In this document: positions 7,401 to 63,912 of the stretch, in pieces
Position numbering within the stretch: the first letter of the stretch is position 1
Layout: each line of letters starts with the position of its first letter
NCBI GenBank assembly: GCA_964252035.1
Contig: OZ176202.1
Reading direction: 5' to 3' (one strand)
Length of the DNA: 64,000 nucleotides
Source of the DNA: Podarcis erhardii
Taxonomy: Eukaryota
Position numbers and translations under genes: made by a program
The notes under the pieces: generated by a model
What the model was told of the DNA's origin: nothing
Seen by the model: only the letters and a program-made list of their open reading frames with translations
Database searches by the model: none

Positions 7401-9816
7401 AGAACACACTTACAATCTAGATACAATAAATTGCAAGGCATTTGCCAAAGCAGTTACTGAAGCAATACAATGTGGTTTTTAGTCTCTATCCTATATATTA
7501 AAAGTACATCTAGCCCCCTAGTCTATTTCATTTGTAATCTTCTACGATATTTGTATGCCATTTATTATATATTACTAAGCTAATAGAATAATTTTTCCTT
7601 TATAAAAAATAATATATTTCAGAAAATATATTCAGTAAATTGAGAAGTGAACAGAATTGTACTATCTATCCTGAGAAACAGGATATCAGAGAAACAGATT
7701 TCCAACTGGTTGAATATTTCATTTTTAAAAGACACAACATTGCATAAATGGTTACAGCTATGTTCAGTTCTACAGATACATTATAAACAAAGGTGAGAAC
7801 CTTGTCAGCTAGAAAGTTGCCAATGTCCAGTTTAAATTTTAACAATTTCTCTGCTGAAGATAGATACAATCTTGCACTTTTGAAAAATCTAGGCCACCAC
7901 AATGGTATTTCCTTTACCAAGACAAAAGGATCTTTCAGCACTACTGCTTAACACTGCTAGAGCAACTCTTATTAAAGCTGTAAAAAATATGGGAAAATCA
8001 CTCTCATAACAGGACTCTGTTAATACACATTAATCGGCAGTATATTTCTTTAATTGCTTCCAATGAAGACACTGTAACATACTAATGAAAACGTATATTT
8101 ACAGCTCTGACTGAGAAACAATGAAAAGTTCATGTATACATTCCTAAGTCAGAACCTTAGTATAACCAGCATAAAATTAGAGAAAATTCAGGTACTTTTC
8201 ATTGCACAATATACATGTATAAAGAAGTATGCTTACTGTACTATTTATGTTATCTTTATTTTTGTAGTTATAGTTCCTACCTTTTCAGAAATTTTGCACC
8301 CTTTGTACTTTCTTGATCCCCAGCTTCAGGATAAAAAGAACGTATCCGAGATTCCTCACGTGGAGCATTCTGTGATGCAACTGCTTTAGCAGGACTTCTC
8401 CTTGAAGGAATGTGATGCAGCGGGCTATTCTGGGAAGGGCTATAGCGACTAGAGCCATTTCCAAGGGAGCCAGACCCAGACCTCTCAGGGCTATGCTGAA
8501 TGGAATGCGAGTGCTGAGGTGTGTTTTTTGCTGAGTGGACTGTGCTGAGTAAGTGGGCATCAGAGCATGAGGAACTCTGACTAGGTGGGGAAGCAATAGA
8601 AGGACTATGGGGAGACCTTGGACTGTTATCATATGCTGAAAGGCCAGGCCAAATATCACCTGAAGCTGCTGCAGATTTACTGAAATCATCTAGTGCCTCA
8701 GAAGGATCATGTTCAAATGCGCCCTTTTCCTCCTCTTGTGATTTATTTTTTAATGGACTGTCTTGTAAAGCAGCTCCCTCCGTTTTCTTTGCTTGCTTTT
8801 CTGATGACCCACGTCTTTTAGAAGATACGGGAGACTTGCTATATGGAGATGAAGACCGAGATGAAGAGGATCTTGGAGACCTAGAAGATCTGTAGGATCG
8901 GCGAGATCTGCTCCGAGATCTCTGGGAAGAGACTGACCTTCTCTTTGGACTTCTAGAACGTGAGCGACCTCGTCTAGGGCTTCGAGAGTGTCTTCTATTC
9001 CAAACAGGTCTGTAACCTCCACGGTGGTATCTACCTCCACCTCCTGGGTAATATCCTCTACCTCTTCCTCTATAGCCATAGGGGCGTCTCATTCCTCTAT
9101 TATTTCTGTAATCTCTGCGGTAATCTCTATTATAAACACGATCTCTACTGCGAGATCGTGAGTACGTCCTAGACCGAGACCTAGAACTAAGATAAATAGA
9201 AATGTTAGTGCCCATAGTTTATGACTCTTCTAAAATAAGAGTTACCCATATTATGTACAGTGGCATGGCCCAGAGACACCCCTGCCCCAAGTAGCTCCAT
9301 TAAGGTCAGGAGGCACTCTGAACAGCAGCCTTTTGAGGGTCAAAGTGCTGTGTCGATGGAATAAAATACAGAAGCCCTCCCTCAAAGAAATGTGCAGATA
9401 GCTATTCTTTCTGTTTATATGAGCTGGAGGGGGCTGGGGAGAGTCAGGGTAAAAAATCAGAGCAACTAATTCCCTTTGTTTCTCTTGTTTATAAGCATTT
9501 CTTTCTTGACATTTCATCTGCTATAAGCATTAAGTCCTGTACATCCTCTGCAACTACTCCACACCCAACGGTAGTCTACAAGCTTCAGTAGCCAAAGCAA
9601 AAAATGTCATTCTTAGCATGCATTTTAAATTTCTGCTAATAATAAAGTCTGTCTTTCAAATGTTTTAAAGAAATTAAACCACTGAGAATGTTAATAAATG
9701 GAAGAAATGTACCTGTATCTCTTTTTTCTAGAGTGTGATCTGGATCTTGACCTTGAACTGGACTGTGATCTGGATTTTGATCTTGAAGAATGTGATCTAG
9801 TGTTAGAGCGACCCAT
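1336..9816 (-). CDS. BCLAF1: BCLAF1 (Bcl-2-associated transcription factor 1), 5' partial spliced CDS: join of 9816-9713, 9186-8281, 7033-6365, 6272-6103, 1441-1336; continues beyond the left edge
   Basis: The five exons join in frame at GT-AG boundaries (104+906+669+170+106 nt). Translation [44 protein letters not shown]...[13 protein letters not shown]...[15 protein letters not shown]...[19 protein letters not shown]...SPEIHR is recognisably BCLAF1 (RS-rich N-terminus, THRAP3/BCLAF1 family). Confidence 0.97.
6103..6272 (-). CDS. BCLAF1: BCLAF1 coding exon 4 ([56 protein letters not shown])
   Basis: Acceptor tactttag, donor gtatgc; 170 nt. Confidence 0.96.
6365..7033 (-). CDS. BCLAF1: BCLAF1 coding exon 3 (YTDEESRV...PLDDSNR)
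   Basis: Acceptor tccacag, donor gtaatt; 669 nt; lies within ORF 6361..7068. Confidence 0.96.
8281..9186 (-). CDS. BCLAF1: BCLAF1 coding exon 2 (RS-rich, [10 protein letters not shown]...KFLKR)
   Basis: Acceptor tatcttag, donor gtagga; 906 nt; lies within ORF 8277..9215. Confidence 0.97.
9713..9816 (-). CDS. BCLAF1: BCLAF1 first coding exon ([34 protein letters not shown]); exon probably begins at 9837
   Basis: ATG at 9816-9814 (context gggaaaATGG); donor gtacat after 104 coding nt; candidate acceptor tttggtag at 9839-9838. Confidence 0.95.
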
Positions 9817-12822: not shown

Positions 12823-13199
12823 CCAAGTGCCAAATAATAATTATACCAAGTTCACTGTGGAGAAAGTCATAATTAACAACTCTTTTCTTGCTTTGACTTG
12901 GGTAAGCTCAATCACATGAAATGAATTGAAAGGGCTTGGAACACACTGTAAATTTTACCTCCAGATGCTGCTCTCAGAGGACATTTGCATGAGCCTGGAG
13001 CAATATCCACACACTGCTGCAGTTGAAAGATACTGCAATTACTGTGATAAGTCATTTTTTGTATCTGTTGGGAATGAAATTCTTAAGGATACACCCCCTT
13101 TCTTCAAGATAAGGCCTCCCTGGAAACACTCTTGAGCATCACTTGGAAGCAAGTTTAATCGTGCGGACTTGCCCAGAGTCCTGGCACTGTGTGAAGAAG

Positions 13200-14520
13200 G
13201 CACGATCCACTGATTACTCTGCACACCTTTTCGCCTTTCTCAACAAAAGGTCTGGTGCTCAACTAGGAGCCGCAGCCAGTTACGAGCAGCTGTCTGGCAG
13301 GGCACGTGCATGCCGACATGCGTGTTCGAGGCATCCATTTAGGGCCCTCGGCGCGGCTAGTATGCCGGGAGGCTGCCAAGGACTCTCCTTCCCCCTAGCT
13401 ACACCTCGTCGCCCTTCAACTGACTGGTCGGGGTGGCGAAAGATGGAGGCAAGTTAAAACGTTATCAGGCGCCGCTCGTCGCGCGGAAAAGACTAAACAG
13501 AAAGCGACGCCCCCCTCGAGGGGCGAGGCGGGCCGCTGCCTTTGGCCCCGCCCAGCCGGCCTCGTTCCGGCCTACCTGCTTCCTCCCCCCCCCCCCGCCC
13601 CATGGGGGAAAGAGGCGGGAGGGAACGGAGAGAGATGACGGGCCCTGGTCCAAACAAGGGAGGCTGCGCGCAGTGTGGGTGTGAGGGAGATGGGAGCCGC
13701 CTCTAGCCCCCCTCCCCCTCCGTTCCTCCCGCCCTTATGAGGCAGACCAAGCCCCTCCCCCGCCTTCAGTTAGAAAAAGGGAGGGGGGTTGCGAAGGGAA
13801 GAACTCGAGGGATTTTTTTTCAAAAAATAACGGCGACTGGAAGCGGGGGGGGGGAGGGAGAGTTGCCGAGCGCGCTAACAAGGCTTCTCGCGCCGGAGGG
13901 CCAAAAGCTGGCGGGGCGGGGGGGGGGGGAGCGGCACCCATGGCGTCCGAGGAAGAACCCGAGCAGGCAGAAGACCTCTCTGGCTCCAGCCCTCCTCGGG
14001 CCGTTCGAAGTCCTGCGTTGGCTATGGCTCACCCTTCTCTGAGCGACAGCTCCGTTCGGCTCTCTACCGCTCGGCGGCCATTTCCAGTCACGGCGAAGGA
14101 AAAGAAATGGGGGGCGGCGGGGGAGAGAGACAGAGAGGAAGGAAGAACCATAGAGAGAGAAAACCACTTTCTGCGACGTTAGAATAGCACGATGGCATCA
14201 CTTCCGCTCGGAGAAAGGGCGGAGAGGAAATATGACCTCTTTACCTTGGCGTCCCCGGCTACCCGTATGAAAGATGGCGGTTAAGAAGCGGCCGAGGCGG
14301 CGTGAGTGACGCTAGCTCCCCTGGCAGGAAGTCTTCGGCGTCACGTGATCTTTCCTTGCGTTGGAAGGACGCAGGGAGAGGGAAAAGCCTATGCTGCTGA
14401 GGCGCATGCGCCTGTCGCGCTTTTTTTTTCCTTGTTAGTTATCGTCTGCGCAACAAATCACGGGTAAAAAAAAGGGTTGATTGCTCGAGTCTTCAGAGTT
14501 TTGCTATAGCTGCGGGATTA
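13200..14520. promoter_or_regulatory. CpG island / housekeeping promoter of BCLAF1, possibly bidirectional
   Basis: Abrupt GC- and CpG-rich zone in an AT-rich background. Motifs: ETS ACTTCCG (14200-14206), YY1 AAGATGGCGG (14271-14280, +), E-box GTCACGTGAT (14340-14349), NRF1 GCGCATGCGC (14402-14411). Confidence 0.85.
14033..14200 (-). other. BCLAF1: BCLAF1 non-coding exon 1 (TSS approximate)
   Basis: Consensus donor AGAAGG|gtgagc at 14032 inside the CpG island; YY1-type AAATGGCCGCC on the minus strand (14083-14073). Confidence 0.65.
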
Positions 14521-18787: not shown

Positions 18788-19013
18788 ATGGGTCAGCTGT
18801 GTACAAAGTGTGTCCAGTTGCTTTGTGACTTGGCTCTCTCAGTAAAAACACTGTCTTCGGGTCTGGTGCAGGATATTCAGGAGTGCTTGGGTCAGATCCA
18901 TGAGTGCCCCTGTCTGAAACGGAAAAACTTCAAAACAAAGCAGCTATACAAGCCTGCCCTTCAGACCCAGGAAGAGGAGATTGCTCAGGAGTTTCTGCAG
19001 CACATTGAAAGAG
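18788..19013 (+). CDS. Vac8-like exon 1 (MGQLCTKCVQLLCDL...EEEIAQEFLQHIER)
   Basis: Kozak atcATGG; donor G|gtgaga; 226 nt; phase 1. First-exon assignment rests on phase match, Kozak context and similarity to the Vac8 H1 helix. Confidence 0.8.
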
Positions 19014-22000
19014 GTGAGAAGTTTCTGTTATGAAGGTGGGGCAGCCAAAGTTGGAGAGATGTTTACTTGAGCTCGGTTGCTTTGTTTAAGATCATGCAGT
19101 TCAGTGATCGTATAAAGTGAATGACACAGAGCTGTTTATGCTTCTGCTCTTCTAAGCAATAAAGGGAGAATGGGGGAACCAGTATTTCACCAGCACCAAA
19201 TATTCAGACAAAGCAGTGGATCCCAGTTCCAGGCCGATTGATTAAATTACTCTCATTCAGCATTTGAAATCCCAGTTCTACAAAAGGCATCATAGCAAGG
19301 GGTAGACCTGTTAGCCTCTTGCATAAAAGCAACAAGAAATATTGTGGCATCTTAAAAGACTAACAAACACATACCGTACTTTTGCTACAAGCACGAGCAC
19401 TTTCCTAAGTCAACATTGAAATACTCTCTGTAAAAACCTATTAGGTATTAGAGGATTGGCGTTGAATTTATTATTTGAAAACAGAAAGACATCTTCTTCC
19501 AACTCTTAAGTGCTCCCATCTTTTGTTTTCATCCTTGATAATCAAGGAAATAGCATGGCTAAGCTGGTTTGCTAAATACAGTAACAGAAATCTAAGTTTG
19601 GAATGTCCCAACTACTCTCACAAACTGGCATATATAACAACTTTTTTCTCACATGAGGTTTGGACTGCAAAAATTCAGCTCCATCTAGTATGCTAATTTT
19701 AAAGGAGAGAATATTTCTACATGGAAGTTTGTCTCTGTCGTGTTTTATCTGTTGCTTTAAATTCTGTGCATTTGGACTCTTCAGGTATTTAACTTCTTCT
19801 GACACAATTCAGACTCTGTTATTATCACATCTTTCTTAAGGTTTTGAAATGTCACCACTTGGCAAGGTTTCCCTAGAGGCTCTGAGGACCTTGGCGTTTT
19901 CAGAGAACCCCAGCTTGCAAAAGTCTGCTGCTCTCTATTACTTGAACATAAATCATCAAAACTGTAAGATCCATTCCATACTCTCTTTTTTAAAAAAATG
20001 TAGAAACCTGGAGAAGCAAAACAATTTCTCCCAAACGTAGCTGAGTTGTGCCCAAGGCAGTCTTACTGGTTCCCTAGCATGTGTGAATTGGGTCTAGCCC
20101 CTTCTAATGCAAGTTCTGTGGATATTTACTTGGAGCCCAGATAATGTGGCACAACTTTTGCAGTTACTAGTCTCCCATTTTATTATTTTATAGAGGTGGG
20201 CTGGCTTTTTACTCATATGAGAGGTTGGCAGAAGAGGGGCTAGTAAAAATAAGTAATACAGGTTTAGTTTTCACGTGAGTTTGCACAGACAGCTGAAAGG
20301 AGGGCTAGAAGGTATTTTGAAAGGCAAAGTAGGTCATCTAGGTGTTGCTCCAAAAGCATCAAGTGTTTGAAGATGTAAGGGACAAGTGTTCCAGAAGAGC
20401 TTTTTGCAATCAGCATTTCATCTCATCCTTGCAGTGAACATCCAGCTGCCTCGAGAGCATCTGGAAATATACTATGCTTTGTTGAAGTCTAATGACTTGG
20501 AGGTTCAGCAGATTTCATCATCGTCCCTTGTGAATTTCTTACTGGAAGGAAGTGGTGAGTAAATGCCCAAGATACCATATCCTGAAGTCTCCATCAGCAT
20601 CAGCTATGATCTTAGGAACTACCACTGTTCAGTTGCCCTGGTATTTTATTTGAAGGGCAGGATATAAATTCCTATACTAAAAAGTGATAATCAGTAGGAT
20701 GGATGTTTGCCCTGATAAAATGTGGGGTTTTTTTTGGGGGGGGGGAGCATTCATTCAGAGGATGGGTTTTGCTTACTTCTCGTACCAAAGGGGTGAGAAA
20801 TCATTTATTCCGGTGTAAGATGCACCAGTGATATTGTGCGCTGATTGCAATCCTTTTCTCTCTCCAGTATATAGCTGAATTAAAGGCACTGTAAACATAA
20901 CATTTACTCCTGCTTTTACTGACAAACAGTAACCAAGGATCATGTCGTCCAAATGGATCTAATTGAGCCAATTCTGGAACTGCTTGAGTCTGAAGATGCC
21001 ACAGTCCAGTGTAATTCCTGTGCATGCATAATGACACTAGCTGTCACAGGTGAGGAGCGTGTCCAAAGCATAGCGCAATAATCAGGTCCAGGGACAATGT
21101 CACACCCACACCTTGTGATTGAGAGGTAATGATGTGCCTTATCGTTATAGAAATTCTGAATCAAGAAGAGCTGAATTCTGCGAGCAGAGTGGATTATTCA
21201 CATTGGTATGCTATAACTAGACGTGGTCAGTGTAGTGGGGCTGAGCTTGTGGAGGCACACTTCTGACACCAGTTTGACTGCAGCTTACCTGGATGGCTCT
21301 GGGTGGTGACACGCTTGGTGCTTCACAGACACACAAGTGGAGCCAATGCAGTCCTCCAGGATTGCCTAAGAACTGCCTAGTCACTGGCCCCATACTGTGC
21401 AATAAATATAAAGTTGGCCTTGGAGTCCTGGGTTCAGATATTAATAAATGATGAAGTGTACTTTCTAAAGTCAGGTTTTGCTTCAAGGTGACCCATAGCA
21501 ATAAGCTTCTTCACAAAAACCTGATGGTAAACTCTTAACATTATTCATTCTGCCACTAGGCACCCAGGACCCCCAACTCATATGCTGCAACTGTTTTCGT
21601 GCTGTCCACTCTCTGTTCTTTAAAGTGTGCCTGGAGGAACATGGATACTTCTTCCTCCAAAGAAACCTCATTGATTTCTATTTTGCCCTGTTGTTTTGCC
21701 AGATGTCAGCCATGAAGCCATCGCAGCAGGAGGAGGAGTGGTACCCTTACTGGCCCTTTCTAAATCCTATGATCCAAGAGTCCAACAAAATGCAGCTGGA
21801 GCAATTTTTAACCTCACGCAATCAGGTATTAGGCTGCAGGAGATTTATTTCAATGGGCCAAGTGCATTGACACAGAAATTTGTGGCAAGGGAAACTTATC
21901 GTCAAAGCTATTGTTTTCTTTAAAATGAAATGTTTTACTTCAAGTACAATGCTAAATCATGTCTACTCAGCGGGAAAGCCAATTGATTCCAATTGGGCTT

Positions 22001-24948
22001 ATTCCCAGAAAATGCTATTTTTAGCTCTTATCTATGCAGTGATGATAAGGAGAATGTTCATTTGGTCAAAATAGCTCATTAGCAATACCACTCTTCCCTT
22101 GCAGAATGGATTCATCAAATTTTGTTTCGACAAGGTGCTCTTCCAGTCCTCACCATTTTGTTACAGTCTCCCGATTCGGAAGTACAGGTAAACTTGACAT
22201 TAAAACAGAAGTTTTTGAGCATTCAAAGCTGTGGAAATAGTCAGCTGCTCAACTGAACCTACAGATGCAGGAAAAGATAGACGAGACAGTAGTCTTTTAA
22301 CATTTTAACTTCCAGAAATTAGTAATTCAATGGTGTTGCACATACTTTTGCTTGGAGGGGGGTACTACATATGTTTGTGCACCTTGGAAATGAACTGCTA
22401 AGCTTTTTAGTGAAATGAAAAAACAGGTCATTGCAGCTTGAAGAAAGGTGCTCATTTCATAGTTCAGATTTGTTGTAGGGTTAAAGAAAATAGCCAGGGG
22501 GTATTCCAGTTCCTCAGTTCTGTTCTCAACTTTTGTTTGGAAATAGCTATTAATAGGCACTAACCTGTTTGAGATTCAAGAACTGAACAAATACTTCTTT
22601 CTCATCTTCAAATAGGCTAGTGCAAGAGAAATGCAAACATGTAAAATACATGACTGGAGTGTAGATTTTTATTCTGTTCTTACTATGACTCCTGAGAATT
22701 GTAAACAGCCTCATGATGAGTATTTTATGAATGCAAAGAATGCCATTTGCCTAGCAGAATCTATGCAGTATGCCTAGCAGAAGGGGACAAAATAGTGTGT
22801 GAGTGATTTGTTAAGAAAAGGGATCTGGTCATCTCACCGATGCAGTATTGTCCCCCTTTTTTGACTCTTAGACACCCAGACTCTCTACACAGTGTGGACT
22901 GTAGCGATCACAGTTGTGTCTCATTGGACAAATATTCTTTTTTTCCTGGGACATTCCCAAAACTCCTGGAGGTGTACTACAGTGCCAATCCAGAAAATGC
23001 AGGGAGATGCTGTATGCAAATACTCTCTCAATTTTATCACCCTAGGAACGCCATCATCAGTCATGGTCCCTTTCATTTGCTGTGAGGTCTTGACCACAGT
23101 TTAAGAACCCTTGGCCACAAGCTTTCCTTTCTCAAAATCACAACACTTCTCTTTCTTACAGTATTATAGCTGTGCAGCTCTGAGCAACATGGCCACAAAC
23201 TCGCAGCACCATAAAGCCATGCTCCAAACCGGTGATAGGTTTCTTCTGCAGATGCTCCTTTTCCTTCTGTCTTCATCTGTGGACAAGGTAAAGCTGTGGA
23301 TTATGCAGGTTTGTTTTACTAACAGCCCCCCTGGTTTATTCAGAAATATTATTTTGATACCAGTGGGGTGTATTTCCAAGTAAGGTATGCTTAGGACTGC
23401 AGGGTAAATATCTTGTGTATAGGGAAATGACTGAAAAGATGCTTTCTTCAGCATGGGGGCGCAAGAATACACAAAGGCTGGAGTTAGCTAGATGTGGCAT
23501 CTTCCATGAATTTCTAAGAGATCAAACTCAGAATCTCCTACAGTCAGAGGGGATTCCATGTTTAAATAATGGTGAGATCTCTTGGTTCAATATTTTCATT
23601 CTCACAGTGATGGCCTGGGAATATAGGGATGGGCTTTTTCCTAATCTCTGCCTGGAGAAGATTGTGAGGTAGTGTGGAGAGTAAAATTTCACAATTACAG
23701 ATCTTCCCAAACAAATGCAAAATTAACTGGATTGTTCACTAAGGCTGCATACACACCATGCATTTAAAGCACGTGACTTCCCTCGGAGTATTCTGAGCAC
23801 TGTAGTTTACCCCTCACAGAGCTTCCATTTGTAGCACTGTTAAACTACAGCTCCATTATTCTTTTCTTTTTGGGGGGATTGTCATGTGTTTTAAATGTTT
23901 TAAATATATGGTGTGTATGCACCTTAAATCAAGAGCAATTTGTTCTTCTGAAAGGCTACACATCCTTGTACTTTTAGGCACCCATAAGTGGCGCTTTTTT
24001 GAGTATCTCTCAGATATCTATGGGGCACTCTCACAGTTGGCTTTAAAGGCTTAGTTTTGCCTCATGTCGCCACAGAGGACATGCTTACATTTTAACTTTA
24101 CCCATCATTGACCCATAATCCTGTCAGAACATTTTGGAGGTTTAGCAAGTATTGCACGAAGCTATTGTGGACCAGTCAGCTTTGCGGCCTTTTCACAGCC
24201 AAAAGTTCTTTCTCTGTTGGGTTCTGATTTCTTTGTTTTCTGCAACTAGGTTTCCAACCAGGCTTGTGTCTGTCTCAGGAATTTAGCCGCGAGTGGTAAG
24301 TACTACAGTCCTAGCTTGCTAATAAACGAAAAATTGCAGTCACTTAAAACATACAAAAATAGAACCCCCTCCTTCCTGTGTTTTGTACAGTCTAGCCTCT
24401 GGAAGGAATGTCCTCAAGTCACTCTTTGTTCTTTTAAGTAAGATGAATACCATGTTTTGGTTTCAGGCACGTGGATGGTGTGACTTTTTTTTTTTTGAAA
24501 GTTAATGAACCCTTCAGTTACCAGAGGCTGTGAGAGTGACAGTACTGTTGTTCTAAAATATACCAACAATCACGGATTCAGTTTTTCAGAGAAGGTGACT
24601 GCAAACCAATCCAGCATTCAGACTGATGTAAAGATTAGTAAAACTTGATTGACCAATACCTTACAATGCTCAAGGCACATTTCTGCCACAGATGTTTGGG
24701 GCGGGAGAAAGATCATGTGGAAGTTTTACACCATCTAGAGAAGGAGAAAAGAGACTGAAGGAGGAGTTGGTGAAAAATATCCCTGGCCACTGACATTTTT
24801 GCTCATGTGCTTGTAATGAAAGATGTCTCTCTGTGTTTTAAATCGACAAGCAAGATCATTAATATGGATTATAACTACAAATCCATACACTTCCTTTTAC
24901 CATTCTTAAACTGTCAATTCTGTGAGGATAAAGTAGACAAGAATAAGG

Positions 24949-24992
<44 letters not shown>

Positions 24993-25144
24993 CTTTTTCT
25001 GGGGGGCCGCAGGGGTATGCATACCCCTAAACATTTTGTGAATCTAAGTTTGGCCTCATTGAGGGGCAGTATTTCAATAGTATTCCTATGAATAGGAAAA
25101 TGAGAGTACCCCTATACATTCCCCCCCGAAAAAAGCACTGTTTT

Positions 25145-25182
<38 letters not shown>

Positions 25183-28100
25183 ATCACTTGCGCCTAGCAG
25201 CTGATTTTGCACAACCACAATCCCAACCAAAGTTACAGAAACACAACTCTTTGTACCCTTTCTATCAATTTCAGTCCCCTGATTCTGAAGAGAATTCTTT
25301 CCAGCAGTGCCTTTCTACAAACACCAGTCCAACCCTCTTGTGCAGTTTGGTCTTCATCTTCATTTGACTTTTCATTAAAATCAGAACCTAAAGTTTAACT
25401 TCTATACTGTCATAACATAACATTGCCTGATCTGTGAAGTCCAGCTGACTTGATTGAGTCAGTCTAGAGGAGGCCCCTTTCTCTCACAAATCCTTTTTCT
25501 CCAAAGCAGCTTCTATTGATCTGCACACATGACCTTGAGCAACCTTCTCATTTTCCAAACAGAGAGTGGTCAGACCAGCATCCTTGCTTTGGGGATCCCG
25601 TCCCACCTGCTCCCTCTCCTGGCATCTAACAGGAAAGACACTCAGCACAATTCCATCATTCTTCTCCGGATTTTATCCCAGCACCCAGACAACCAGGTAC
25701 ACATTTCTGTTTTATATTACCCTTTGCCTTGTAAGCTTTAGTCAAATGTGCATGGCCGTAATGCTCCGAGGCAGCTCAACCTTGAAAGATGACAGTGGAC
25801 GAAAGTTTCATCAAAGGTAACACATTTAAAATGACAGTTTGACGCGGCCAGGTGATCAGTAGACAATAATTCAAAATTCATTCTGAAAAGGCTTCAGCAT
25901 GCATTTGAAAGTGTGGGATGATGTGCATATCCAGAAATAAGGTTGGAAAGGGAGCGCTGGGAACAAATTCTGATTATAATCATATTGGGTTCTAATTTGT
26001 CTTCTTGAGATTCACATTCTGTAGCAAATATCCATTTGTGGTTGTGATGGATGGCATAGCTGCTTTGGCATTGGAGAAAATGTTCTGTGACAGAGGAAAC
26101 CTGAACAATTAATCCTCAGTAGAGATGTTTATATTGTCTTCTATTGGGTCAGCTTTTCATCTTGGTTTGCCCAGACTACTGGTTTCAATGCCCTCCAGCC
26201 TGGGGTTGTTTTTTTTAAAGACCTTTTCAAGGATTCCCATTCTGCTCTGACCTGAATTCCAAGTGAAGTAGAAAAGGAGCTCTCCATGGGAACCCCAGCA
26301 GGAAAACAAACTGTGGGACAAAGCTAACATTTCCAACCAAGATGAACTAATGTTTCAGTGGTTACCAACACTACACTGTGTTCCTAGGGAAGAAGAAATC
26401 GTTTGTTCTTTGGTGACTTTGGGTTTGGTTGACTTCATAGCACCTTCATTCCTTAACAAACAGAAAAGCCCCACATCTTTGTAATATAAACTTGCCATCT
26501 GCATTCGGATGTGGGAGTGATATATGAGTCTCTATATGGTGGGACACAGGCATCAATAAAATGAATGGAGGTTGTAACATGGGAGGTTTGTGGTGGAACA
26601 GGAAAGTCAAATCCTGCATGTACCATTGGATGCGCACACACATTTCAAGATCATCTGATGTGGTTTGGAGGTAGTGCAGGCTTGATTTCTCTGCATTGCT
26701 GCCGTGAGTTGGGACTGAAACACTAAGAGACAACAATTTGTGGAGTTTTTCATAATTCTCCATCCCAGCTTTGTAGCTCCTAAATTGCCATACACTTGTT
26801 GCAGTTCATCCTAAATGTAAAGAGTTTTAAAAACTTAAAGCATATCTCTTTGATTCCTTAGTAATTCATTCACTCTACTCTTTTTGGTGCCTGCTTAAAA
26901 AAGAAAAGCATGTTTGTTTCAAAAGTTCCAGTGTATCTGAAGAAGTGTGCATGCACACGAAAGCTCATACCTAGAACTAACTTAGTTGGTCTTTAAGGTG
27001 CTACTGGAAGGAATTTTTTGTTTTGTTTCAAAAGGTTTGTCTGGACATGCAGAATATTGGCATGTGTTTTCTGGTTTTAGTTTATTGCTGATTTTTAATT
27101 TTTTTAAAAAATGTTGTAAATACTTGTTTTAATTGGGGATGGTTTTTTTACTGATTATTGTTTTTATTCTTTTTTTACCTGCTTTGAGGTTTTATTAACA
27201 ATTAAGTGATATATATATCTATATATCTCAATCACCCATCTCTAGTCCCATTCACAGTGGTATGGTAGAACCATGTCTCTTCTGCTGCCTTCATTTCAGC
27301 TACTCACTGGCTACCTTTCCCTTTGCAGGATGCACTGATGTGTGATGAAGTGCTGCAGGCGGTAGGGAAGCTGCTGCTCACCTGGAAAATGGACCCAGTG
27401 ATTGTAGGTCACGCTGCCTGCTTTATTAAAAATCTCAGCCTTTCCAGAAGCATACAGGTGAGTGCCAAGTCTCCCTTTCAGGATTACACATTGTTCTGAA
27501 GGCTTCACTTCACTAAGTGAGATTAAAATAAGGTTACCAGATTTTTTTCAATGAATCTGGGGACACTTTTCAACTTCAATGGATTTTGTATGGGGACTGA
27601 TTTGTAAATCTGGGGACTGTCCCCGGGAAACAGGGACATCTGCTAACCTTATAATTAAAATGAAACATCGTCTTTGCTTCATTCAAGGGAGTAAATGACC
27701 ATGTGTTTCAAAAAGTACACAAGAAAAATCTTACCAACAAATAAAAAGCAAGTTGTGACTTTTACGCCTTCACTGTAGGCTTTTTGGAAATTTGGCTTTG
27801 TTGGTATACATGCTTTTTCAACTAGGTTGTTCCTGTTCCTCCTCCTTCTCCTTCATTAAATTTGTATACTGTTCTCCATTTGAAGACCATACGGCAGTTC
27901 ACAACATAAAAATACAAAATGAGAACACAAAATACATAATAAAACAAAAGCAAAAACCAACCAATAACACCCCTTCCCACAAACACATTTAAAAGGCCAT
28001 AGAATGCTCAACCAACCAAAGACCTGGCTATAGAGAAACATTTTTGCCTGGCACCTAAGGCTATATAATGAAGGCACCAGATGAGCCTCCCTGGGGAGAG

Positions 28101-31100
28101 CATTCCACAAACAGGGAGCAACTGCAGAAAAGGCCCATTTTCATGTTGCCATCCTCCAGACCTCTCATGGAGGAGGCACACAAAGAAGGGCCTTAGATGA
28201 TAATTGCTCAAGAAAGTGGAAACCCACTGTGTATGGATAAATGTTTGCAGGAAATATGCCATATATTCTTGGCTCCTCATACCATCTCCCAGATTGCCTT
28301 GTTATCACACACTTGATGGCTTCTTGTGAAATGAAGGCTATTGTAACACATATCATTGCAGACTTACTCTGTATTCATTAATTTCAAGCACATCCGTGTA
28401 ATTTGAACTCTCCTGGTGGGACAGTCTCAGGGCGTCATGATGCATAACTAGGGCATTTAAGAGAACATGTATTTGCATAGATTAAATCCCCACAGATGCC
28501 TTTGTTGCACACATTTCTGGGCTTAACAGCTGAATAGGCACAGCCCTGAAGGCCCAAGGCAAACTATGAGCTTGGCATCTATTATTGCGGCGGGGGGGGG
28601 GGGGACACACCATAATTTTCAGAATGAATGTAACAACATCATCTACTTTTGTTATTTGCAGAGAGTCATAGAAAGTCCATGCATTGAAGGACTTTTTCAA
28701 GCTGTCCAGAGTGTAGACTTTCTAGAAGAGGAATCTCTTCACTGTGTGATGTCTTCTCTTGTTGACCTGATGAAACATGGTAAGGGGGCATCCAGAGTGC
28801 TGAGTGGATGGGCTGATAGCACACACATTTTGTACTCATTGATTTCCGTTGCTGCTGCCAACTTTACAGCACAGTGTTATGCATGTCTGCTCAGAAGGAA
28901 GTGCTGTAGCCTTTACCTACGCAAAAGTCAGTGTGCATAGGGTTGCAGCAGCCTTACAATTTTGGGGCACAGAGGGAACCAAAGGGCAGTCATAAAAATC
29001 AACGGATTCCCACAGTCAGTTCTACGTTATCCCACTGGTTGCATAGCTAACAGAGCTGCTAATAGGAGTGAAACACAGCAGACAAGTGATTTTAATCCCA
29101 ACTCAAAGTGTTGTATCGGTAACATAGTGTTGACATTGCTAGTAATTTCTCTAGTGCTTCTAGACCAGCAGAGGCAAACATGGTACCCTCTAGGTGTTTA
29201 CTAGCTGAATGTATGGAAAGGGAGGTAGCAGGGCAGCAGAGCATCACATTTCCCATTGGTGAAACCCTCCCTAAGGAATCTTCCCACTTATATCTGCTTC
29301 TGAACATTTTGACACCCCCCTTTCTATGTATGTATTTCAGTCTTCTGAAATCCATTTTACTGGCCTCTGAAGCTCTGCTAGTCTCTTTTCAGCCTTGGCC
29401 CTAGGGCTGTTCATTTGTCTCCTTTTATTTCAACTCTGCTGATTTAGTCTTTTACTCTGCTCTTCTACCACCAGAGGGAGCCACAGTGCGCATGCTGGAA
29501 TTGGCGGATGACTCAGTGGTATGCAGTCTGGCGACACTGGCTGGCCAAGTGGAACAAGCAGAGCTTTCGTTCCACGCTGCCCTTGTGATCAAACACCTCC
29601 TACAGCACAGTACGTATCAATGTAAAAGATCTGATGTTTGCATTTCCAGCATGCCTGATATCACTCAAGTGACAACAACAGAAGTCCCATGGGCCCAAAC
29701 AGGTTGAATAGCAGGGGAGAACACTGTACCAGTCAGCTTTGACAAAACTTTTATTTATTTTCTAATCCTGCTAATTCTAGGATAGTTTTCAGAGAGTTAC
29801 CTGGGCTACAATAGGACTCCCTAAGATTTTTTTTTCTTTCTGGACTAAGTGGCAGCTGCATCTATCAGTTGTCCCACACCAGCAGACTCCTTTGGGTATA
29901 AAGAATACATGTTGAGTTCATGGCAGGAGCTTCTGTCTTGCTTGTGTAAATCCTTTTCTCAGTATTACATTTCCCTATTGAAGATAGCAACACTGCACAA
30001 AGCCGCTAAAATATTTGTGCATCACTGTGCGTCATATGAAGTGACGCTTGATTTGAATAACCAATGATAACATAAACATAATGTTTCTGTTGAATGCACC
30101 ATATAACATTTTAAAATAACAGATGTTATAAGTGTTAGATTCAGAATAATCACAGTGAGTGTATATTATTATTATTACAGCGGCCAAAATCAGCAAGAAA
30201 TCTTATTATTCTGAGTTACAAACTTCAACTTTATGAACCAAACCTGAAGTTTAAGGCTGAAGTTTAATACCATACCAAACCTGAAGTTTAAGGCTGAAGT
30301 TTAATACCAAACCTGAAGTTTAATATCATACTGGCATTCATGATTGGTATATATGAATTCTGAATATTATTAATTAGCATTATAAAATCTTTATTTATTA
30401 AGGTCTCAAGGCAAATCACATAGTAAACAAATATAAAAAACACAATAAAAATGATCGCACTAAACATCGGCCCAAGCATACATTTCCCACCATAAAATTA
30501 TCATAAGCATTCCCAAACTATGAATACCAATTTATAATTTGTCATTCACCCAACAACTTAGTAACAAGAAAACCAAATAGTGCATCAGCGATGTAATGGG
30601 GTATCAACATTTTACAGTGCATGTTTACTCAGAAGAAATCCCACTTTGTTCAGTGACTTACTCCCAGGTTAAGTGTGTAAAATGTTGCCTCGTGCATTCA
30701 GTTTTGTAATTATTCCTGTCTCCAAATTAATTGCACAGAAGAGGTGGTGTCTTTGTTGAAATCTCATATGAGCAAGGTACAGCAATACCTCATCAAGTAT
30801 CTTATTCACCAAGAGAATCGCTTTCAGCATCTGGGCATATCCACTCTCTGCATATTACAGAAAGGTATGGACTGCTGTATCACTCGCCACATAGCATCCC
30901 ATGGGGTTCCTATGCTATGGCATAACAGCTAAGCTCATTAGTACTTACCAGAAGCACCGCAGCTATAATGCGCAGCTGAGTCCTGCCTGTTTCTGGTTAT
31001 GAAAACCAAAGTCCTCCTTTAAAAAAGGTTTGGTGGAAAGTTAATTGACTCTCATTTCACTGAGAATGCAATCAGAACTTTATACAGGCTCATTTGCCGT

Positions 31101-31844
31101 ATTCATTACAAGGCTTCCTACTGGAAGTGAATCTGTTCTCATAATCGCATATATGAATCCTGGAAACAGCTATTTACGGTTCTCATAAAAAAGTGGGGAG
31201 TAGTCTTCTTTTTTGGCATTTTTAAAAAATCACAGTGGAAAAGTAGTTATGCATGCACCTTCCAGCACCAAACAAACCTGACTTACTTTTTTAAAAAATG
31301 TATCGGTTAACATGGAATGCAAAATAACTTCCATGCATAAATGTTTGATAAATGGCTTAGATTATCATCACACTCTGTGTCTGAAAGTGGGGAAATACCC
31401 CTAGCAAAGAAAGCAGGAAGCAAGATTCTCAGGAGACATTGTTGAACAAGTAAATGATCAAAGGATGTATCTAACTTACTCTTGGAAAGTATTAAAACAA
31501 CAAGGAATATATTAGGTGTGAGTAATAGATAACTCCTGTTCTCAAAGTTGGTCAATTTGGCTTTGATATGAATGTCAGATTTTTGTAGATCCAAGCTGAA
31601 TGCAAGACAGGAGAACGAAACCTCTCTCCAATGTTTTGTATAGTTGTGGACCAGGGCAAGATGTACACATATGATGAGTTGTGCAGGTCTAGAAGTTGAG
31701 TTGTTGCTTCCCTATTTTTTAGATGCAGAGTTTTCATCAGCATTCAACCAGAGCCAACTGAAGAAGCACCTTGACCAAGTCCGTCAACAAACTGCAGAAA
31801 CACAGGAGCTTCTCAGTATTGCTGTCAGACATATGGACACCTGA
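18788..31844 (+). CDS. Vac8-like armadillo-repeat protein, complete 14-exon CDS, 1731 nt / 576 aa
   Basis: Exons 18788-19013, 19841-19963, 20435-20554, 20930-21049, 21703-21825, 22105-22187, 23162-23287, 24250-24295, 25563-25696, 27329-27457, 28662-28779, 29475-29609, 30739-30864, 31723-31844. All introns are GT-AG, phases are consistent, there is no internal stop, and it ends in TGA. ARM consensus segments (LLxLLxSxDxxVQxNAxGAIxNL) align by eye with yeast Vac8. Confidence 0.9.
19841..19963 (+). CDS. Vac8-like exon 2 (GFEMSPLGKVSLEALRTLAFSENPSLQKSAALYYLNINHQN)
   Basis: Acceptor ctttcttaag, donor gtaaga; 123 nt; resembles Vac8 [21 protein letters not shown]. Confidence 0.9.
20435..20554 (+). 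CDS. Vac8-like exon 3 (LNIQLPREHLEIYYALLKSNDLEVQQISSSSLVNFLLEGS)
   Basis: Acceptor catccttgcag, donor gtgagt; 120 nt. Not in the ORF track. Confidence 0.88.
20930..21049 (+). CDS. Vac8-like exon 4 (VTKDHVVQMDLIEPILELLESEDATVQCNSCACIMTLAVT)
   Basis: Acceptor aaacag, donor gtgagg; 120 nt; resembles Vac8 [35 protein letters not shown]. Confidence 0.9.
21703..21825 (+). CDS. Vac8-like exon 5 (DVSHEAIAAGGGVVPLLALSKSYDPRVQQNAAGAIFNLTQS)
   Basis: Acceptor gttttgccag, donor gtatta; 123 nt; canonical ARM repeat. Confidence 0.93.
22105..22187 (+). CDS. Vac8-like exon 6 (EWIHQILFRQGALPVLTILLQSPDSEVQ)
   Basis: Acceptor ttcccttgcag, donor gtaaac; 83 nt; phase 1 to 0. Confidence 0.92.
23162..23287 (+). 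CDS. Vac8-like exon 7 (YYSCAALSNMATNSQHHKAMLQTGDRFLLQMLLFLLSSSVDK)
   Basis: Acceptor ctttcttacag, donor gtaaag; 126 nt; resembles Vac8 VQYYCTTALSNIAVD. Confidence 0.93.
24250..24295 (+). CDS. Vac8-like exon 8 (VSNQACVCLRNLAAS)
   Basis: Acceptor gcaactag, donor gtaagt; 46 nt; resembles Vac8 VKCQATLALRNLAS. Confidence 0.9.
24950..24990. repeat. (CA)n microsatellite
   Basis: Directly visible. Confidence 0.97.
24990..25140. mobile_element. Short MITE ending in AAAAAAGCACTG
   Basis: cagctttttctgggggg...gaaaaaagcactg; sister copy at 15944-16104. Confidence 0.6.
25144..25181. repeat. (TG)n(AG)n compound microsatellite
   Basis: Directly visible. Confidence 0.95.
25563..25696 (+). CDS. Vac8-like exon 9 (ESGQTSILALGIPSHLLPLLASNRKDTQHNSIILLRILSQHPDNQ)
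   Basis: Acceptor ttccaaacag, donor gtacac; 134 nt. Confidence 0.88.
26926..27021 (+). mobile_element. Penelope-like terminal fragment with 13-bp TSD TTTGTTTCAAAAG
   Basis: ctgaagaagtgtgcatgcacacgaaagctcatacc...cttagttggtctttaaggtgctactggaagg; duplication at 26913-26925 and 27022-27034. Confidence 0.65.
27329..27457 (+). CDS. Vac8-like exon 10 (DALMCDEVLQAVGKLLLTWKMDPVIVGHAACFIKNLSLSRSIQ)
   Basis: Acceptor ccctttgcag, donor gtgagt; 129 nt. Not in the ORF track. Confidence 0.88.
27529..27651. mobile_element. hAT-like MITE
   Basis: TIR TAAGGTTACCAGAT ... ATCTGCTAACCTTA. Confidence 0.65.
27870..28240 (-). mobile_element. L2 LINE 3' end
   Basis: Minus-strand translation WNALPREAHLVPSLYSLRCQAKMFLYSQVF is typical of the L2 ORF2 C-terminus, followed by a T-rich tail. 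Confidence 0.75.
28662..28779 (+). CDS. Vac8-like exon 11 (RVIESPCIEGLFQAVQSVDFLEEESLHCVMSSLVDLMKH)
   Basis: Acceptor ttatttgcag, donor gtaagg; 118 nt; phase 0 to 1. Confidence 0.82.
29475..29609 (+). CDS. Vac8-like exon 12 (EGATVRMLELADDSVVCSLATLAGQVEQAELSFHAALVIKHLLQH)
   Basis: Acceptor ctaccaccag, donor gtacgt; 135 nt. Confidence 0.85.
30237..30324. repeat. Local tandem duplication (unit accaaacctgaagtttaaggctgaagtttaat, about 2.6 copies)
   Basis: Units start at 30237, 30274 and 30306; the core ctgaagtttaa occurs five times. Confidence 0.9.
30739..30864 (+). CDS. Vac8-like exon 13 (KEVVSLLKSHMSKVQQYLIKYLIHQENRFQHLGISTLCILQK)
   Basis: Acceptor ttgcacag, donor gtatgg; 126 nt; resembles Vac8 FLIRFLKSDYATFEHIALWTILQL. 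Confidence 0.88.
31723..31844 (+). CDS. Vac8-like exon 14 with stop (DAEFSSAFNQSQLKKHLDQVRQQTAETQELLSIAVRHMDT*)
   Basis: Acceptor ctattttttag; 122 nt to TGA; phase consistent. Confidence 0.8.

Positions 31845-36384: not shown

Positions 36385-63912
<27,528 letters not shown>

Follow-up and report, generated by a model that had tools for sequence, protein, structure and literature searches.

We analysed a 64,000-nucleotide stretch of Podarcis erhardii contig OZ176202.1 (the window), which carries an intact gene of 14 coding exons under purifying selection. The exons lie on the + strand at 18788–31844 (Table 1), are bounded by GT-AG at 13 of 13 introns, and splice into a single open reading frame of 1731 nt including the stop codon, with no internal stop and a product of 576 aa. 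The first exon model came from a splice-site dynamic programme run over 14 open segments and was then refined by alignment to 580-aa orthologs. A 558-aa model built on splice scores only, with a 44-nt exon 12 and an exon 13 that starts at 30702, was ruled out by this alignment, which fixes both exon 12 and the start of exon 13. The 14-exon GT-AG gene with a 576-aa frame, as proposed in the first-pass annotation of this DNA, is confirmed by the splice model together with the ortholog alignment.

The gene had also been placed between BCLAF1 and MAP7, a position borne out by Pfam matches on both flanks; the order of the three genes is the same in Podarcis muralis. Upstream of the coding exons, a CpG island encloses a candidate first exon. 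Because a 1-nt indel that separates the window from P. muralis shifts the frame of its short ATG-initiated ORF, this exon is unlikely to be coding.

Table 1. Positions of the gene, its neighbours and associated features in the window.
Feature	Position	Strand	Length	Content and support
BCLAF1-family exons	6361..9215	-		Pfam PF15440, E ~1e-29
CpG island	~13000..14500
Candidate upstream first exon, probably non-coding	14274..14301	+		Homology with the start annotated for the P. muralis gene range
Coding exon 1	18788..19013	+	226 nt	ATG at 18788; N-terminal lipidation-type module, helix 6–38, disordered linker with LYKPAL, H1 helix
Coding exon 2	19841..19963	+	123 nt	ARM1; intron position common to sea urchin, scallop and amphioxus
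Coding exon 3	20435..20554	+	120 nt	ARM2; ortholog alignment, intron match
Coding exon 4	20930..21049	+	120 nt	ARM3; Pfam Arm, E 4.6e-6
Coding exon 5	21703..21825	+	123 nt	ARM4 (RVQQNAAGAIFNLT); Pfam Arm, E 3.2e-6
Coding exon 6	22105..22187	+	83 nt	3' intron is the sole vertebrate-specific intron
Coding exon 7	23162..23287	+	126 nt	ARM5-6 (YYSCAALSNMA)
Coding exon 8	24250..24295	+	46 nt	Contains QACVCLRNLA; R317, equivalent of Vac8 R276
Coding exon 9	25563..25696	+	134 nt	R358, equivalent of Vac8 R317; next residue Ile instead of Asn
Coding exon 10	27329..27457	+	129 nt	K401, equivalent of Vac8 R359
Coding exon 11	28662..28779	+	118 nt	Ortholog alignment, intron match
Coding exon 12	29475..29609	+	135 nt	Homology preferred over the 44-nt alternative
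Coding exon 13	30739..30864	+	126 nt	C-terminal ARM (YLIKYLIHQENRFQHLG)
Coding exon 14	31723..31844	+	122 nt	Includes TGA stop; C-terminal helix
MAP7 exon	45494..45913	-		Pfam PF05672, E 1e-6

The protein matches fungal Vac8 in sequence and fold

Which family does the product belong to? A Pfam scan of the 576-aa protein gave ARM/HEAT matches only, with no IBB and no ARMC3 C-terminal domain. When single exons were searched against the PDB, the top natural match of exon 5 was Vac8 residues 153–188 and exon 7 matched Vac8 chains only, at 217–251; these exon-level matches are collinear. Exon 13 alone gave no match and exon 1 alone only saposin B at a non-significant E of 0.56. The coelacanth ortholog (P0086) matched Vac8 at 202 bits (E 1.4e-58) in a single stretch, residues 59–530 against 13–481, as compared with 68 bits (E 7e-18) for beta-catenin and 62 bits (E 5e-16) for importin-alpha. 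HMMER searches against the PDB Vac8 chains reproduced all the Vac8 alignments that had earlier been quoted by eye.

Vac8 is a lipid-anchored armadillo-repeat adaptor of yeast. An AF2 model of the lizard protein (pLDDT 89.9) was compared with known structures by Foldseek. The top PDB matches were the Vac8 entries 7YCJ, 6KBM and 5XJG (E 8e-19; TM 0.81–0.84 normalised by target), and each of the top 16 Swiss-Prot matches was fungal Vac8. Identity was 26–31% to Vac8 versus 13–18% to ODAD2, ARMC3 and beta-catenin; beta-catenin/plakoglobin and importin-alpha (13–20% identity, E ~1e-12) came well behind. Superposition of an AlphaFold model on Vac8 structures had been suggested as a check, and Vac8 is the top fold match at a TM of 0.84.

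The likeness to fungal Vac8 (S. cerevisiae Vac8p; PDB 5XJG, 6KBM, 6KBN, 7YCJ) covers length (~560–580 aa), the ~12 ARM repeats, a Gly2/Cys lipidation-type N-terminus, a LYEPLL-like motif, the H1 helix and collinearity from end to end. The lizard protein differs in its identity of only 26–31%, in ~40 extra N-terminal residues, helical and flanked on either side by a Cys group, and in the presence of a conserved C-terminal helix.

A lipidation-type N-terminus and a partly replaced groove

The 576-aa product is made of a module with Gly2 and many Cys, an LYxPxL linker, an H1 helix (predicted at residues 59–74) and ~12 ARM repeats. Its N-terminus, MGQLCTKC, fits the myristoylation pattern, a C-x-C follows further on, and seven Cys lie upstream of LYKPAL. 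With the Vac8 family the lizard protein shares its Cys cluster, its LYxPxL (LYEPLL-like) motif and its H1 helix. Judged by these motifs, the protein would be N-myristoylated and/or S-acylated, which would place it on the cytosolic face of an endomembrane. Unlike the lizard protein, invertebrate Vac8-like proteins are mostly without Gly2. Gly2 is also missing in 30 of 112 vertebrate orthologs and, thus, myristoylation is not a family-wide feature.

By analogy with Vac8, the ARM superhelix may be where partner proteins dock through extended peptides. In the yeast protein, the Vac17 backbone is read by H196, N234, N277, R317 and N318 (PMC10161063). We compared these five residues and the R276/R317/R359 triad with their equivalents in the lizard, which has R317/R358/K401 at the triad positions, keeps Asn at the N234 and N277 positions (N274 and N318), and carries Q236 and I359 at the H196 and N318 positions. 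Across 112 vertebrate orthologs, several features of the groove emerged: (i) Asn is retained at the N234 and N277 positions in 108–109; (ii) the R317 position holds Arg in 13, each of them a squamate among the taxa sampled, and W, C or S in the others; and (iii) the N318 equivalent is Asn in none, the H196 equivalent is His in one and the R359 equivalent is Arg in three. In contrast, H196, R317, N318 and R359 show no variation among 69 fungi and hardly any among 48 invertebrates. Of the five side chains reading the Vac17 backbone, three (H196, R317, N318) are therefore replaced, together with R359, in nearly all vertebrate orthologs; relative to fungal Vac8, the lizard has lost H196, N318 and R359, and most vertebrates R317 as well. 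The Arg/Asn groove is intact in invertebrate Vac8-like proteins, whereas that of the lizard is partly rebuilt. This comparison, a new observation here, suggests that part of the peptide-binding groove was rebuilt on the vertebrate stem.

Does the protein nevertheless perform the full yeast-type job, residing on lysosomes with the same groove chemistry and tethering the nucleus, the autophagy-initiation machinery or a motor adaptor? We consider this unlikely. The fold, the H1 helix and the acylation-type N-terminus are kept, the lizard has R317/R358/K401 at the triad, and the two Asn persist in most vertebrates, but the equivalents of R317, N318, H196 and R359 are mostly lost from the 112 vertebrates despite being invariant in fungi, which makes conservation of the yeast ligands or binding mode unlikely. 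Moreover, Nvj1 and Vac17 are fungal proteins, and neither of these Vac8 partners is known from other organisms. Given such a rebuilding on the vertebrate stem, the vertebrate protein probably has partners other than yeast Nvj1, Atg13 and Vac17 or binds in a different mode. A yeast-like role at the lysosome or in nucleus contact would, by analogy, be plausible.

The vertebrate gene descends from the Vac8 ancestor

In an ML tree, a check that had been proposed with the Vac8 assignment, the vertebrate family is nested in a Vac8 clade supported at 100/100 (Metazoa 99/97, vertebrates 100/100); ARM-BTB, ARM-SAM, U-box, F-box and algal ARM proteins served as outgroups, with ARMC3, beta-catenin and importin-alpha absent from the tree. 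The vertebrate branching order within the family is that of the species tree. A long stem of 1.25 substitutions/site leads to the vertebrate clade, which is sister to all invertebrates including sponges, not to amphioxus. An AU test marginally rejected a placement of vertebrates outside fungi and invertebrates (p = 0.032, for a group named after the tree was seen).

Gene structure provides a second line of comparison. In the Vac8 genes of sea urchin, scallop and amphioxus, 12 of the 13 lizard introns occur at the same alignment column (within one) and in the same phase. Exons 6 and 7 sum to the 209-nt exon of the invertebrate genes, and a 46-nt exon, such as exon 8, is kept in four of four animal lineages compared. 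One metazoan clade unites the lizard gene with the 'vacuolar protein 8-like' genes of scallop, sea urchin, amphioxus and sponges, and these invertebrate genes share with it, beyond the introns, the Cys cluster upstream of LYEPLL. Their proteins are 41–44% identical to fungal Vac8, whereas the lizard protein is ~30% identical to both groups. The lizard gene, fungal Vac8 and the genes named 'vacuolar protein 8-like' in sponges, lophotrochozoans, echinoderms, hemichordates and amphioxus derive from the same ancestral gene.

The long stem, the position as sister to all invertebrates, sponges among them, and the marginal AU result would also fit an old Vac8 paralog that arose by duplication before the animal-fungal split or early in animals. 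However, no second, slower-evolving Vac8 copy was seen in vertebrates: the best 120 matches of the scallop ortholog included no vertebrate protein, though fungal Vac8 was present. The intron positions and phases and the N-terminal motifs shared with invertebrate genes, and the agreement of the vertebrate clade with the species tree, likewise argue against a paralog, which we regard as improbable. Sequence ranking, fold ranking, the ML tree, the N-terminal motifs and 12 of 13 introns all agree with the Vac8-family ortholog claimed at first pass. Very probably, then, the locus is the Vac8 ortholog of lacertids, a gene of ancient origin that fungi and animals have in common.

The gene is constrained in squamates

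The 576-aa model is 97.2% identical to P. muralis LOC114594173 (P0253) over 576/576 residues; this is the same gene, with identical exon structure and 16 amino-acid differences. When the 14 exons were projected on the P. muralis and Zootoca vivipara loci, the resulting CDS translated exactly to the annotated P0253 and P0260, with a last exon that differs by two codons in length in Zootoca. In Rhineura and Hemicordylus all 14 exons match those of the model in length, except for one codon in Hemicordylus exon 2. Stops and frameshifts are absent from all five squamates and every splice site is canonical.

Among these five species, dN/dS was 0.24–0.38 (NG86; bootstrap intervals 0.19–0.39), and the regional value for codons 1–80, the N-terminal module, was 0.11. 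Thus, the gene is under purifying selection, and the ratio near 1 named earlier as part of a refutation is not observed. The Biopython ML estimator gave a higher omega (0.53–0.85) on very low-divergence lacertid pairs; our estimate rests on NG86 with the more distant squamates and on bootstraps. A dN/dS of ~0.3 exceeds that of typical housekeeping genes, and expression of the chicken gene in pituitary is low (0.56–0.82, in the units of the published table), as might be expected of a gene that is decaying, or an annotation artefact, in the lizard lineage. Yet the intact frames, canonical splice sites and near-identical exon lengths of five squamates, the bootstrap upper bound of 0.39 and the low omega of the N-terminal module make such a state highly improbable.

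Distribution of the family and relation to ARMC3

The automated names 'vacuolar protein 8(-like)' are found in sharks, ray-finned fishes, coelacanth, amphibians, reptiles and birds, and the RefSeq and UniProt predictions include chicken LOC421690 and a Xenopus 'vacuolar protein 8'; that such an annotation might already exist had been foreseen. Retention in non-mammalian vertebrates, as claimed earlier, holds in the homolog search, in which the family is present across non-mammalian jawed vertebrates; the best 120 matches, with 158 weaker ones beyond them, included no mammal. The literature searched contained no functional work on the 'vacuolar protein 8(-like)' predictions and no localisation, acylation or partner data for animal members.

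ARMC3 has been presented as the homolog or ortholog of Vac8 in mammals (PMC8664900, PMC12859697, bioRxiv 10.64898/2026.10.05.756849), and a published analysis reports an ARMC3 clade separate from Vac8p (PMC3141441). When a representative library was searched with exon 5, the result was flooded by multi-repeat ARM proteins, with few orthologs among the 150 matches listed. A Pfam scan of 30 of these matches for an ARMC3 outgroup found none, but ARM-kinase, ARM-BTB, ARM-SAM, U-box and F-box proteins instead, so that ARMC3 was compared through Foldseek only. Mouse ARMC3 ranks 22nd in the Swiss-Prot list (E 2.8e-12), and its 17% identity to the lizard protein is no better than that of beta-catenin. 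An ARM superhelix of similar length occupies its N-terminus (TM 0.67 normalised by query), but ARMC3, at about 870–880 aa, has an extra C-terminal non-ARM part, whereas the lizard protein is ARM/HEAT only. Its description at first pass as a longer, different protein is upheld by this 17% against the 26–31% for Vac8, and the lizard protein is much closer to Vac8 than ARMC3 is.

It is true that repeat-level similarity is common to all ARM proteins and that unrelated ones flooded the exon 5 search, but membership of a known metazoan ARM family (ARMC3, ODAD2/ARMC4, beta-catenin, importin-alpha) with a merely generic resemblance to Vac8 is practically excluded by the full-length score of 202 bits for Vac8 against at most 68 for others, the Foldseek identities, the lack of any extra Pfam domain and the 100/100 split in a tree without ARMC3 sequences.

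A possible Vac8-type adaptor in animals

What would a Vac8 descendant do in a vertebrate? We tentatively put forward a composite reading, one we would not yet favour over its negation: that non-mammalian vertebrates and many invertebrates have a direct descendant of Vac8 which mammals are without, that ARMC3 is a distant ARM relative, and that the vertebrate protein is an organelle adaptor with a lipid anchor and with a ligand groove rebuilt when vertebrates arose. If this is true, an uncharacterised lysosome or endomembrane tethering system may be accessible in Xenopus or chicken.

In the autophagy and contact-site field, Vac8 is taken as fungal and its animal counterpart as missing or as ARMC3; a closer relative with a conserved gene structure exists, which calls for caution in reading ARMC3 phenotypes as 'Vac8 function'. 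The Vac8-like gene occurs from sponges up to reptiles and birds, and databases already list it with a name assigned automatically. Seen from the window alone, the outcome is an ordinary one, a gene that can be predicted correctly and is annotated already; the automated annotation was known, and what is new is the long vertebrate stem and the partly rebuilt groove. Xenopus, chicken and sea urchin would be tractable models for a Vac8-type lipid-anchored adaptor at animal lysosomes. Full-length mRNA contigs without introns were found for a frog and a skate ortholog.

An intact and constrained gene between BCLAF1 and MAP7

On the + strand of the lizard gene region, splice-site dynamic programming linked 14 open segments into an uninterrupted ORF. 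A 558-aa first model, which differed at exon 12 and at the exon 13 acceptor, was ruled out by alignment to two 580-aa orthologs (P0086 from coelacanth, and P0076), and the same alignment fixed the longer form of exon 12. The resulting CDS of 1731 nt with stop encodes 576 aa with GT-AG borders at 13/13 introns, reproducing the 14-exon ORF of the first-pass annotation. When the exon coordinates were projected by blastn onto Podarcis muralis (L001) and Zootoca vivipara (L002), the CDSs translated exactly to the proteins of these species, P0253 and P0260; the window protein is 97.2% identical to P0253 over 576/576 residues and 93% identical to the Zootoca protein, which places the window in a lacertid near Podarcis. 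Exact-match splice reconstruction recovered the same 14 exon lengths in Rhineura and Hemicordylus, save one codon in Hemicordylus exon 2. The neighbours proposed from the sequence alone were borne out by PF15440 and PF05672 matches, and the order BCLAF1(-) / Vac8-like gene(+) / MAP7(-) is the one annotated in Podarcis.

The gene is intact and constrained. The first-pass annotation had named a dN/dS near 1 across squamates as counting against its reading; among five squamates, pairwise NG86 dN/dS was 0.24–0.38 (bootstrap 95% intervals 0.19–0.39) at dS up to 0.54. Codons 1–80, covering the lipidation-type module, the linker and the H1 helix, were the most constrained (omega 0.11 versus 0.28 in the ARM region). 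Full-length intronless mRNA contigs are found in public run assemblies for one frog and one skate ortholog, and chicken LOC421690, a 'vacuolar protein 8-like' gene, is listed at low level in a pituitary RNA-seq table (PMC5148799).

Several minor features accompany the gene. A CpG island separates it from BCLAF1 and may be a promoter shared with that gene. A short exon opening with ATG is homologous to the sequence at which the Podarcis gene range is annotated to begin. Its frame differs between the window and Podarcis by a 1-nt indel, so it probably serves as a first exon without coding sequence. The microsatellites of intron 8 appear as THTHTH and CVCVCV in ORF translations.

Features of the window around the Vac8-like gene
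Feature	Position	Strand	Detail
BCLAF1-family exons	6361-9215	-	PF15440, E about 1e-29
CpG island	13000-14500		GC 0.52-0.68; CpG observed/expected 0.66-1.1
Short exon, probably non-coding	14274-14301		followed by GTGAGT
Vac8-like gene	18788-31844	+	14 exons
Exon 1, residues 2-34	18791-18889	+	non-significant saposin B similarity
Intron 8 microsatellites	about 24940-25180		two, (CA)n/(TG)n
Exon 12	29475-29609	+	longer form
Exon 13 acceptor	30739	+
N run, MAP7 region	41841-41981		141 bases
MAP7 exon	45494-45913	-	PF05672
N run, MAP7 region	46838-46999		162 bases

The lizard protein descends from Vac8

In PDB searches, the best natural match of exon 5 was Vac8 (residues 153–188), and exon 7 matched Vac8 only (residues 217–251), collinear with the exon 5 match. 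At full length, the coelacanth ortholog matched Vac8 in a single stretch (59–530 against 13–481, E 1.4e-58), followed by beta-catenin (E 7e-18) and importin-alpha (E 5e-16). For the Podarcis protein, AlphaFold2 modelling on an 86-sequence alignment (mean pLDDT 89.9) predicts a helix (6–38), a disordered linker (43–58), the H1 helix (59–74), about 12 ARM repeats (84–545) and a C-terminal helix. Foldseek ranked four Vac8 crystal entries first in the PDB (E 8e-19, TM 0.81–0.84 by target, 28–30% identity), with beta-catenin behind at about 1e-12. Against Swiss-Prot models, the first 16 matches were all fungal Vac8 (E 1.6e-20 to 5.7e-19, 26–31% identity), followed by ODAD2, ARABIDILLO, plakoglobin, ARMC3 and beta-catenin. 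Recent studies present ARMC3 as the Vac8 homolog or ortholog of mammals (PMC8664900, PMC12859697, bioRxiv 10.64898/2026.10.05.756849), but it ranked 22nd, behind every one of these fungal matches (E 2.8e-12, 17% identity to the lizard protein). An older catenin study reports that Vac8p, ARMC3 and ARMC4 each form a monophyletic clade of their own (PMC3141441).

Consistent with these rankings and with the orthology proposed in the first-pass annotation, the vertebrate family fell within the Vac8 clade in a maximum-likelihood tree of Vac8-like and other ARM proteins (55 rows, LG+C20+F+G4). This clade was set apart from other ARM proteins with 100/100 support and contained fungi (100/98), Metazoa (99/97), invertebrates (93/86) and vertebrates (100/100), the vertebrate branching order being that of the species tree. 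At 1.25 substitutions per site, the stem leading to vertebrates is very long. Could vertebrates instead lie outside fungi and invertebrates? Constraining the tree in this way cost 8.9 log-likelihood units (p-AU 0.032), a marginal rejection of a grouping that was named after the tree was seen.

Direct descent of the lizard gene from the animal Vac8 gene is strongly supported, because two tree-independent lines of evidence agree with the tree: (i) upstream of ARM1, all groups have in common a Cys cluster, the H1 helix and an LYEPLL-like motif, which reads LYKPAL in the lizard; and (ii) 12/13 lizard introns match those of sea urchin, scallop and amphioxus in phase and in alignment column (within one). 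Lizard exons measure 226, 123, 120, 120, 123, 83, 126, 46, 134, 129, 118, 135, 126 and 122 nt, and those of sea urchin 151, 123, 120, 123, 123, 209, 46, 134, 126, 115, 135, 126 and 125 nt. Intron 6 alone is vertebrate-specific, dividing the 209-nt exon into 83 + 126. In the Branchiostoma floridae gene model (L005), a further exon of 105 nt sits between the conserved exons of 126 and 209 nt; it may have been inserted in this lineage or be an artefact of annotation.

Distribution among animals

Retention in non-mammalian vertebrates, as first proposed, was confirmed from sharks to birds and squamates. The matches listed for the coelacanth query included full-length orthologs, 50–60% identical to it, from sharks, rays, chimaera and sturgeon and, among tetrapods, from frogs, a salamander, caecilians, turtles, crocodilians, birds, tuatara and many squamates. 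No mammal was among its best 120 matches (158 further matches lie outside these), and the gene is likely absent from mammals. A teleost, the killifish Fundulus heteroclitus, has a 'vacuolar protein 8' (P0123) that has diverged much further than the copies of sharks, sturgeon or coelacanth (36% identity to the lizard protein, terminal branch 1.08), without the usual form of the LYxPxL motif.

Another query, the 'vacuolar protein 8-like' protein of scallop, shares 32% identity with the lizard protein. Its best 120 matches comprised orthologs from molluscs, a brachiopod, an annelid, a nemertean, hemichordates, echinoderms, amphioxus and sponges, then fungal Vac8 at 41–44% identity; no vertebrate protein was among these 120, nor was any protein of cnidarians, arthropods, nematodes, flatworms or tunicates. 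As weak negative evidence, the absence of the latter five groups suggests several independent losses in animals.

The gene is not new in itself, since automated annotation already names it: as had been anticipated, vertebrate orthologs are called 'vacuolar protein 8(-like)' or else 'uncharacterized protein LOC...'. Literature using the phrase 'vacuolar protein 8-like' yielded no discussion of it. Its direct Vac8 descent, conserved gene structure, rebuilt groove and apparent absence from mammals seem to be undescribed so far. The identity and distribution proposed in the first-pass annotation are supported, and the putative yeast-like function stands apart from them.

The peptide-binding groove is altered in vertebrates

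Yeast Vac8 reads the extended Vac17 peptide backbone through its R317, N318, N277, N234 and H196 side chains, and Nvj1 and Atg13 run along the same inner groove (PMC10161063). We counted groove residues in an alignment of 69 fungal, 48 invertebrate and 112 vertebrate proteins. On this alignment, the Asn ladder persists in its N-terminal half, and the ARM7–9 part of the groove appears to have been rebuilt on the vertebrate stem.

Proteins retaining yeast Vac8 groove residues
Vac8 residue	Fungi	Invertebrates	Vertebrates	Vertebrate replacements
H196	69/69	45/48	1/112	Q 64, R 45
N234	69/69	48/48	109/112
R276	69/69	48/48	87/112	N 19
N277	69/69	48/48	108/112
R317	69/69	47/48	13/112	W 60, C 22, S 13
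N318	69/69	48/48	0/112	I 57, T 30
R359	69/69	46/48	3/112	K 65, Q 28

The window has R317, R358 and K401 at the three Vac8 Arg positions (R276, R317 and R359, respectively). In a 19-species sample, Arg at the position of window residue 358 was restricted to squamates; Trp stands there in other sauropsids and a caecilian, and Cys or Ser in fishes and the remaining amphibians. The Asn partner of R358 is Ile in the window, and R358 appears to be a reversion to Arg, specific to squamates, that lacks this partner.

N-terminus and possible mode of action

The window N-terminus, MGQLCTKC, fits a myristoylation pattern. Gly2 is present in 82/112 vertebrates, the window included, whereas it occurs in 2/48 invertebrates. 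S-acylation is the more general candidate anchor, since Cys residues precede the LYxPxL motif throughout. The lizard protein has Vac8-type architecture as well as Vac8 descent; by analogy with the family, a lipid anchor at its N-terminus would hold it on the cytosolic side of an endomembrane, and its ARM groove would dock extended peptides of partner proteins. The groove changes suggest that the partners or the binding mode are probably unlike those of yeast.

The exon 1 helix is modelled by AlphaFold2 as a single long helix between two Cys groups. The weak similarity of exon 1 to saposin B (E 0.56) is probably due to chance, resting on a C-x-x-C start and the helix that follows.
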